Shown: positions 21,444-24,400 of the stretch, piece by piece | Position numbering within the stretch: the first letter of the stretch is position 1 | Layout: each line of letters begins with the position of its first letter | Source: Guillardia theta CCMP2712 | Taxonomy: Eukaryota; Protista; Cryptophyta | Direction of reading: 5' to 3' | Assembly (NCBI RefSeq): GCF_000315625.1 | Contig: NW_005434488.1 | Span: 1-40,480, forward strand | Length of the DNA: 40,480 bases | Notes under the pieces: model-generated | Told to the model about the DNA's origin: nothing | Databases searched by the model: none | Seen by the model: the letters and a program-made list of their open reading frames with translations, nothing else | Position numbers and translations under genes: made by a program

Positions 21444-24400
21444 ATGTCAGGCACTTACACTGCGTCTGTCTTGCTCCTGCTTGTATGGCTGCAGGTCTCA
21501 GTATGCGATGCACAGACATGCGACATCAGTTCTACGACATGTCCCTGTAACACAACAACCACAGCATCGATCTCCTCCTCCACTGCCTCCCAGCTCCCCT
21601 GCCTCTCCGCTGGAAACCTCTCCTTCCTCTGCCAGATGCAGACTCCAGCTCAGGTCGGCGACTACCTCACCTGGGACAACCCGCTCCTCTTCGCCGTCCC
21701 GCCATGGCTGGACATGAGCCAGAGCACGAGCATGCTCTACTTCACCGCGCGGGAGGGGGCGGCAGGGTCGTCGGGAGTGACGCTGCAGAGCAGTCAGGGA
21801 GAGGAGCGAGGGAGGATGGAGATCAAGGTGGAGGAGGGAGGGAAGAGGCCGGGGTTTGTGATGGCGTACCGTGCGGCTTGCATCGACCCGTCAGCTCCCT
21901 GCTCCTGTCCTCCCCTCAGCATCCCCAAGATGTTTCCCTGGCTCTACAAGGTGGACTGCCGTCGGCCGTGTACGTTTGGGAACGTGAGCGAGTTCGAGGG
22001 GGCACGGGGGACGTACAAGAGGAGCGGGGGGGAGTACGGGGGAGTAGCGTACTGGGAGCAGGAGGGAGGGAGGATGAAGGTGTTCTTTGAGGAGCAGGAG
22101 CAGCGCTGGTACATCTCAAGGAGCCTTGACGTGAAGGATGCGCTTTACAGAACTCTCGCTGGTAGTGTGATGTCTCTGCCCGACGAGGTAGAGTGATACT
22201 TGTTGGTTTCTTTGAAGTTTGATTCCTTCACAGCTGACTGTGAGATGGGAGGAAAAGATGAACAACTCGTGGAGTTTTTGTTTCCTCTCAGTTCAAGACA
22301 TCACGGCTGGGTTTCAAACGTGCTCTCAGAACATGGAGTTGTCGCCGTCCAATGTGATTGCACCATCGACGGACTTGTACTCTTGCAATCTCAACAACAT
22401 GAGCAGGTTGGTTTCAGAAGTGATTGTGCTCATTACTAATCTGCATTTTCTTTCAGTGTTGTCTTTCTGCGAGATGTTTCATATCACACTGTCGACAAAT
22501 TTGTCACTGCATTCACACCAGTGGAAGGATACTGGCATGGCAGCATATCAACAGTCAACATCACCATGGTATCCTCTGACAAAGAGTCTTTTCTGTTCTG
22601 ATTCATCGCAGGACCAAGATGCTAAGCTTTCGAGTGTCAAGAAAGATCCCATCTACGACAAATGGGGACTGGAGTTTGCCTCTGGTAGGAGACACTTGTG
22701 TCTTTGTTGTCTGCCATGACAACCTTGGAAACAGATTACGTGACAAGTCCCGACGGTCAGTTCGTGTATGTTGAGGAGTTTGCTTCGGACTCCATCGCTG
22801 TCATCAAGAATGGAAGTTTCGTCGACCGGCTGCGCCAGGGGCAGGTGAGGCTCTTGACAACCACCTCTCTCCTCCTCCTCATATCTTGTCTCATCCCACT
22901 GCACGCTGTTCCCGCCCCTGCTCTGCTCTGCTCATTTCAGTTGCTTCTCTCGCAACGATCCGTCTACATTCTCTGCTCTCTGCTCTGCTCTGCTCTGCTC
23001 TGCTCTGCTCTCTGCTCTGCTCTGCTTTCCTATCCTTTCCTCTTATTTTCTCTCCTCTGCTCTCCTCTGTTCTCCTATGCCCCTCCTCTGCTCTGCTCTG
23101 CTCTGCTCTCCTCTTCTATCTCTCCTCTCCTCTCCTCTCCTCTCGTACAGTGTCTCGGTTCCCTCCTGAGCACGTTATAATCTCTCTTCTATCCCTCCTC
23201 TCCCTTGTGCTCATACTTATCCTCCAACCGCCAGTACCGCATGCAGTTTCAGGCAGGGCAGCAAGTCGACCCCTGCGCGTCTGCGAACCCGAACGTGGGG
23301 TCAGGAAACATCGAGGTCGAGGGGATATGCAGCACAACCAAGTTTGTGACAAAGAGCGGGACATCCTATCTTCTTGTCAACTCGGGGTGAGGACGCTTCT
23401 TGGACGTTATCGACACCTTGACCGTTGAGTTTTTCAGCTGCAAGAGATTACAAGAGTACACCTCCTTCATCAACACATCTCAATCGCTTCTTCTTGACAA
23501 GCCTTCCTCGTTTCCTTGTATCGACCAAGTATCGTTCTTCTCTCCCCCTTTCTCTCACCTGCTCATGCTGCATTGCTCAGAACTCCCAGCAAGGTTGCTT
23601 GCAAGCTCAACAGATCCAACCGCAGGTCTTGCCAAAGAACTTGTGCCCTCAACTCTGACCTGTCAACAGTTTTTGTGGAACGTCACGACCGGGTGGTGGG
23701 ATTTCTCCTACGAGTACGCAGGGGGAAGTTATTCTCGCAGTGCGAGGTGAAACAACTATGATCGCACTCATCGTGTTTGATTTGCTTCTCTTTCTCTTAC
23801 CTATCATTTCATCTGCTTTCTGTCCCATCACATCCTCTTGTGCTGTGCTGTGCTGTGCTGTGCTGTGCTGTGCTGTGCTGTGCTGTCCTCTCATCTCCTC
23901 TCATCTCCTCTCATCTTCTCGCATCCCCTGCAAGCTTGAAGTCGAGCATGTTTTATGTCTGTCGCTCTTGTCATTCTCTTTCAACAGTCATCCCATCGGT
24001 CTCATGTGTCTGTTGGTAGGCAAGAGCCCAACGTGTGCGAGGAGCAGCACGATCTCAAGATCGCCCCCTCCTCCTTCCTCAACCTCAAGAAATTCTTCGC
24101 ACGAGGTCCCCAGCGATGGTCCTCGTCCGCCACCCTCCAGGGCCCCGTGTGTCGAGATGGAGTCTGGGACAGGACAGAGGACAAGACTTTCTCTGTTCTC
24201 AACAACCTCGTCTCTTTCGGGGAACTGAGTGTAAGTTGAGAGATTATGATGACGATGAAGAGGAAGATGATGATGATGATGATGATGATGGATGATGATG
24301 ATGATGATGATGATGATGATGATGATGATGGAGATGATGATGATGGAGGTGATGATGATGGAGGTGATGACGACGACGACGACTATGATGATGATGATGA

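Follow-up and report, generated by a model that had tools for sequence, protein, structure and literature searches.

A diverged 49-nt island inside the homogenised patch of two inverted Guillardia theta paralogues, probably the uncopied gap of an interrupted gene-conversion tract

Why should a short coding stretch of two duplicated genes differ at most positions when the sequence on either side of it is nearly identical? This question is raised by the window analysed here, the whole 40,480-nt stretch of Guillardia theta DNA, which is eukaryotic, with many introns and many microsatellites. In it, the first coding exons of two genes, A and B, form an inverted repeat that encloses a segment of about 52 bp, divergent in sequence and conserved in length (Table 1). 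A preliminary description regarded this segment as a cysteine-bracketed loop that had escaped homogenisation, either as a specificity determinant under diversifying selection or as a swappable variable cassette. Genome-wide searches covered the 87.1-Mb assembly, which consists of 669 contigs and places the locus on contig C186; exons were treated singly, by reference. A literature search on Guillardia theta and gene conversion brought up nothing of relevance to this nuclear locus.

Table 1. Coordinates of the two genes, the homogenised blocks and the interruptions in the window
Feature	Position	Strand	Details and source
Gene A, first coding exon	19472-20296	-	275 aa; ORF list and translation
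Gene B, first coding exon	21444-22187	+	248 aa; ORF list and translation
Unique spacer between the start codons of A and B	20297-21443		sequence read
Gene A, downstream exons, mirroring those of B	4692-18049	-	tblastn matches
Gene B, downstream exons, mirroring those of A	23418-39782	+	tblastn matches
Small identical block, 17 nt	B 21556-21572 = A 20106-20090	B +	alignment
Micro-gap with 3-nt indel (ITFPS vs IS-SS)	B 21573-21576 vs A 20089-20083	B +	alignment and direct read
Left homogenised block, gene B	21577-21913	+	partner A 19746-20082 (-); 4 mismatches, all in 21793-21830
Island, gene B copy	21914-21965; diverged core 21917-21965	+	16 residues encoded; 21914-21916 with only synonymous P/L codon differences
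Right homogenised block, gene B	21966-22110	+	partner A 19549-19693 (-); 4 mismatches
Island, gene A copy	19694-19745; diverged core 19694-19742	-	encodes GSAESLSSVYQVSCSA

The first coding exon of gene A comprises a signal-peptide-like N-terminus, a Cys-rich stretch and a conserved core, and its start and N-terminus can be aligned to protein P0001 of the cryptophyte Hanusia phi, the one relative discussed below. Gene B, too, starts with a hydrophobic segment resembling a signal peptide and with a stretch rich in Cys. The GAG/GT junction that ends exon 1 falls in the same alignment column in both genes, and GT splice donors probably follow 19472 (A) and lie at 22188 (B). Transcription of the two genes diverges from a spacer of 1.15 kb, which presumably holds their promoters. 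This spacer contains two repeat structures of its own. A 44-nt direct repeat (80% identity, spacing 58 nt) occupies 21097-21198, and 3.1 tandem copies of a 31-nt unit occupy 21347-21441, ending 2 nt upstream of the gene B ATG. Each 31-nt unit has a near-perfect palindromic core of the type GACCCTTG-T-CAAGGGTC. Neither upstream of gene A nor anywhere else in the window is there a counterpart (0 expected by chance); the array may represent a regulatory or 5'-UTR element that is specific to B. Long microsatellites of pentanucleotide (CTCTG/CTGTG) and trinucleotide (GAT/GAC) type are found at 13374-13551, 22970-23130, 23835-23900, 24240-24480, 25020-25140 and 35804-36038. Several are in frame and would, if exonic, encode poly-Asp or Ser/Leu-rich runs. 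Most spurious repeats of the window, inverted as well as direct, stem from these microsatellites.

The relation between the two genes reaches far beyond their first exons. When stop-free pieces of the A side were compared with the B side by tblastn, 14 further collinear and perfectly mirrored exon matches with 30-67% amino acid identity were obtained, running from 18049 down to 4692 in A and from 23418 up to 39782 in B. In the whole-genome search, the B segment 28454-28822 found its sole match in the mirrored A segment 14511-14807 (31% identity), and the exon-1 core exists in two copies only, A and B, in the 87-Mb genome. A mirrored, collinear exon order in a pair without further copies in the genome identifies A and B as the two arms, each at least 16 kb long, of an ancient head-to-head duplication. 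Two runs of N, at 34542-34799 (258 nt) and 37671-38566 (896 nt), mark assembly gaps in the region that mirrors the downstream exons of gene A, and the gene B model cannot be completed from the window. The arms have diverged to saturation almost everywhere, so that the anomaly of this locus is the homogenised patch and not the island within it. No second homogenised segment was found between the arms, the remaining long inverted matches in the window being microsatellites.

The patch measures about 550-555 nt and lies in exon 1, the coding sequence nearest to the symmetry axis. A repeat search returned it as two inverted arm pairs, one of 340 nt at 99% identity (19743-20082/21577-21916) and one of 145 nt at 97% (19549-19693/21966-22110). 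Together with the island they form an ungapped inverted repeat of 534 nt in a single register, which has 9 mismatches in the 485 nt outside the island core. Estimated after Nei and Gojobori, dS and pN amount to 0.026 and 0.012 in the left block and to 0.073 and 0.017 in the right block. The similarity of the flanks cannot be a matter of chance, because synonymous divergence of 0.03-0.07 there stands against saturation in the adjoining parts of the exon. Inside the left block the two paralogues are closer to each other (110/113 identical residues) than A is to its Hanusia relative (78/111), whereas at the N-terminus the A-B value (18/45) is about equal to the A-Hanusia value (25/66), a comparison made with one orthologue and at the protein level only. 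Low dS beside saturated pS, together with this excess of paralogue over orthologue similarity inside the block and not at the N-terminus, shows that the patch results from interlocus gene conversion rather than from constraint on the protein.

Conversion seems to have acted more than once. The mismatches are unevenly spread, with none in the 216 nt of 21577-21792 and 9 in the 269 nt elsewhere (Fisher p=0.005), and from this we infer at least two conversion events of different ages. Divergence is similar on the two sides of the island (5/124 and 4/145), figures that fit one patchy event and two events equally well. Third codon positions are rich in GC in the blocks (GC3 0.80-0.85) compared with the unconverted N-terminus and tail (0.50-0.62), a difference that GC-biased conversion could explain, as could a stronger codon bias in a conserved core, and that hints at a long-running, recurrent GC-biased process. 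Of the 9 block mismatches, 7 have G/C in B and A/T in A, one has them the other way round and one is C/G, a pattern suggesting that most of the GC-to-AT changes after conversion fell on gene A, or that the conversion itself was biased.

Against this background the island stands out by its contrast with the blocks. Its core contains 30 mismatches in 49 nt, with the same length in both copies, and a synonymous mismatch at 21914 explains why the segment was at first given as the 52 nt from 21914 to 21965. The encoded peptides are equally long and identical at three of 16 residues (Y, V and C), while the CSCPPL and PCTFGNV flanks are identical in A and B. The divergent, length-conserved island, its Y-x-V-x-C scaffold and its identical flanks are thus as the preliminary description had quoted them, its position between conserved cysteines (CSC...C..PC) holds at the sequence level, and its escape from homogenisation is borne out by an island pS of 0.79 beside block dS values of 0.026-0.073. 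When the two islands are aligned globally, their score is no better than that of 5.7% of shuffles; apart from a TCTAC.AGGT....TGC stretch, identity is near random. Two other origins were considered and rejected: the reverse complement of the island aligns worse than the forward strand (-5 vs 0), which speaks against a micro-inversion, and other reading frames give stops or unrelated peptides, which speaks against a compensated frameshift.

The island can be compared with the unconverted part of the same exon. The exon-1 tail (22113-22187) has a nucleotide identity of 0.387, a pN of 0.533 and a saturated pS of 0.85, and the island has values of 0.396, 0.549 and 0.79 (likewise saturated). The divergence of the island is that of the unconverted A/B background, and omega is not estimable for it because synonymous sites are saturated. 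Its edges are abrupt, with no mismatch in the 83 nt preceding 21914 or in the 21 nt beyond 21965. Such sharp edges and the exact conservation of length could also have arisen if the whole 534 nt had been converted in a single event and a length-neutral complex mutation had then rewritten the 49 nt in one copy. This sequence of events is most improbable: the divergence of the island matches the old background exactly, no template for it is present in the genome, and the A island is homologous to that of Hanusia (8/16) while B keeps Y-K-V-x-C, so the stretch is old homologous sequence in both.

What the island and its flanks look like outside this locus was addressed with several sequence collections. 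A word-index search of 5.8 billion protein clusters returned a single match, the Hanusia phi protein P0001 from the EukProt transcriptome, a 220-aa fragment with 65% identity to the query. When 1.84 billion representatives were searched with a profile, P0001 appeared again, accompanied by eight weak matches to long proteins that extend over several stretches. Of the six proteins scanned, four have extracellular domains of bacterial type, one of them with SBBP beta-propeller repeats. These weak matches are a lead only. A scan of metagenome contigs gave no relatives. Like A and B, P0001 has a signal peptide, a Cys-rich N-terminus and the core, with CSCPPL and PCTFGNV invariant; unlike them it is truncated and known from the protein alone, and it carries a third, A-like island variant, GSFERAWGVYKVACLA, identical to A at 8 of 16 and to B at 4 of 16 residues. 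All three proteins keep the Y-x-V-x-C scaffold and an island of the same length, and the gene B island retains the Y-K-V-x-C positions with Hanusia.

The same collections and the assembly bear on the proposal of a swappable cassette, in which silent donors would replace the island by way of its flanking handles, or in which an inversion between the arms would shuffle promoters and N-termini with or without it. The geometry would allow this, since near-identical inverted blocks bracket the island and the chimeras formed by a crossover would differ according to the block, left or right, in which it took place. No donor is at hand, though: protein, DNA and pattern searches of the 87-Mb assembly failed to reveal a third core copy, a further copy of either island (up to 3 mismatches allowed) or any CSCPPL-x16-PCTFGNV variant beyond the two copies, and the protein and metagenome collections searched contained one relative only. 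The assembly bears no sign of alternative isomers, and blocks that are 2-3% diverged imply that exchange is rare on an evolutionary scale and not programmed. The cassette of the preliminary description is accordingly rejected, and the mechanism as a whole, inversion included, is given hardly any weight.

Domain and structure searches do not assign the proteins to a known family. Pfam returned no family for either exon-1 protein at E<=1, the best scores in the ESM Atlas (0.76-0.78) were uninformative, and an AlphaFold2 model from a 3-sequence alignment reached a mean pLDDT of 33.7, too poor for use. Among ten downstream stop-free pieces, Pfam gave sub-threshold matches and one marginal match to EPTP (PF03736, an EAR beta-propeller repeat) in the gene A piece 11468-11863 (-), with 23.9 bits at a cut-off of 21; a genome-wide scan for the EPTP family at E<=0.01 had no match on the contig of the locus. 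Other contigs of the genome (C5, C85, C234 and C7) contain stronger EPTP repeats, in giant open frames. Judged from their sequences, A and B are best explained as genes for large, putatively secreted, Cys-rich proteins that appear restricted to their lineage, and the family is known from Guillardia and Hanusia only, both Geminigeraceae.

The most serious alternative to a neutral gap is that selection maintains the divergence peak. The core would evolve in concert, the loop would carry a functional difference between A and B (e.g. in partner or ligand specificity), and haplotypes in which conversion had erased this difference would be purged. The literature describes low divergence with a sharp peak in it as the signature of such a process (opsin exon 5 and RHCE/RHD, PMC3924837; GOT1 paralogues, PMC3728101). 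The length and the Y-x-V-x-C positions shared by A, B and Hanusia indicate that the stretch is constrained and not junk; the loops show a radical difference in charge and hydrophobicity; the high GC3 of the blocks suggests long-term recurrent conversion, under which a neutral interior should not survive; and the island was spared by at least two conversion events. Under the model of Innan and Teshima, a divergence peak is expected and present (30/49 vs 9/485), but there is no non-synonymous excess (pN 0.549 vs 0.533), nor is the island the part of the domain that evolves fastest. When the A-Hanusia core is scanned in sliding windows of 16 residues, 27 out of 139 equal or exceed the island in variability; with one orthologue available, this is a test of low power. 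Between species the island is thus moderately variable and not specially fast-evolving, and its variability lies below that of two patches inside the homogenised blocks, which score 5-6/16 against 8/16 for the island. Further points against selection are that its divergence equals the unconverted background, with dN/dS beyond estimation at saturated synonymous sites, that divergence does not decay gradually around the peak, and that a tiny unconverted patch at the left edge forms a gap with no obvious functional reason. We consider selection for different loops rather less probable than not.

The specificity determinant under diversifying selection that was originally proposed found no support in these tests. 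With a pN of about 0.55 against 0.53 in the background, dN is not elevated; divergence equal to the background, no extra variants in the genome and dN not raised are together the outcome that the preliminary description had itself named as pointing to a mere gap between converted stretches. As to the further variants for which it had proposed a search, the profile search contributed one relative and the metagenome scan none.

The reading we favour, at a probability of roughly 0.55, is that the island is a piece of old divergence left uncopied by patchy gene conversion between the arms. After the ancient inverted duplication the arms diverged to saturation almost everywhere, and recurrent conversion from arm to arm, in at least two events, homogenised about 555 nt beside the symmetry axis; it would have stopped at an already diverged 49-nt stretch or been restored across it. 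With 39% identity over 49 nt, the strands would be unable to pair. Either heteroduplex extension or branch migration would halt at the island edges, each side being converted separately, or a heteroduplex spanning the island would leave a bubble that is restored to the recipient sequence, resulting in a discontinuous tract. The cause of the gap would accordingly be a heterology barrier or patchy repair, and both diversifying selection and a cassette mechanism are unnecessary. Patchiness is supported by the left edge of the tract, where a second, much smaller interruption, the micro-gap with its 3-nt indel, separates the 17-nt block from the 340-nt block.

Several considerations count against this uncopied gap. 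More variable patches were converted, so low prior similarity alone fails to predict the failure of conversion; as two patches more variable than the island were homogenised, low conservation alone does not block the process. With conversion of the core going on ever since the duplication, as the high GC3 may hint, a neutral interior of 49 nt could hardly have become saturated without selection or an early barrier. Finally, the two loops differ sharply in charge and residue character, that of A having a net charge of about -1 and small polar residues and that of B about +3 and aromatic residues. A more far-reaching combination can be imagined, in which a selection-protected specificity loop of a cryptophyte-specific, giant secreted pair is joined by occasional inversion of the central 1.5-2.3 kb, exchanging promoters together with N-terminal modules, whether or not the loop is included, so that the locus would act as a eukaryotic flip-flop reassorting a two-allele recognition loop; we regard this as quite unlikely.

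Related patterns are known from other systems. Arm-to-arm gene conversion in inverted duplicates is described for the human Y-chromosome palindrome P6 (PMC3723533). The present locus shares with such palindromes the short spacer, near-identity by non-reciprocal copying, homogenised synonymous sites and inversion as a possible by-product, but here, in arms at least 16 kb long, homogenisation is confined to about 555 nt, the rest is saturated and the tract is interrupted. With opsin exon 5, RHCE/RHD and GOT1 of Tigriopus (PMC3924837, PMC3728101) it shares a short diverged coding stretch within a homogenised duplicate pair. Those peaks rise from a low-divergence background and are tied to known functional residues, whereas the present pair has a saturated background, which the island matches without exceeding it, and the edges of the island are abrupt. 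Three further sources report conversion tracts that are discontinuous and recombination that is suppressed by sequence divergence (PMC2853141, PMC5531827, PMC4663472), a mechanistic route to a pattern of converted, unconverted and again converted sequence without selection. There, single events are seen directly in crosses or reporter assays, while here the evolutionary end product is observed and the number of events (at least two) is deduced from it.

The feature is a new example of a known phenomenon, an interrupted gene-conversion tract between inverted paralogues. It offers a clean and small case in which old inverted paralogues convert within a short conserved patch and leave an internal gap, and it illustrates that such a gap is not evidence for diversifying selection unless its divergence exceeds the unconverted background. 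As found, it is a local curiosity in genome evolution that involves no new mechanism. If selection does keep the two loops different, the island would mark the functional surface of a family that is known from Guillardia and Hanusia only and has so far no known domain.
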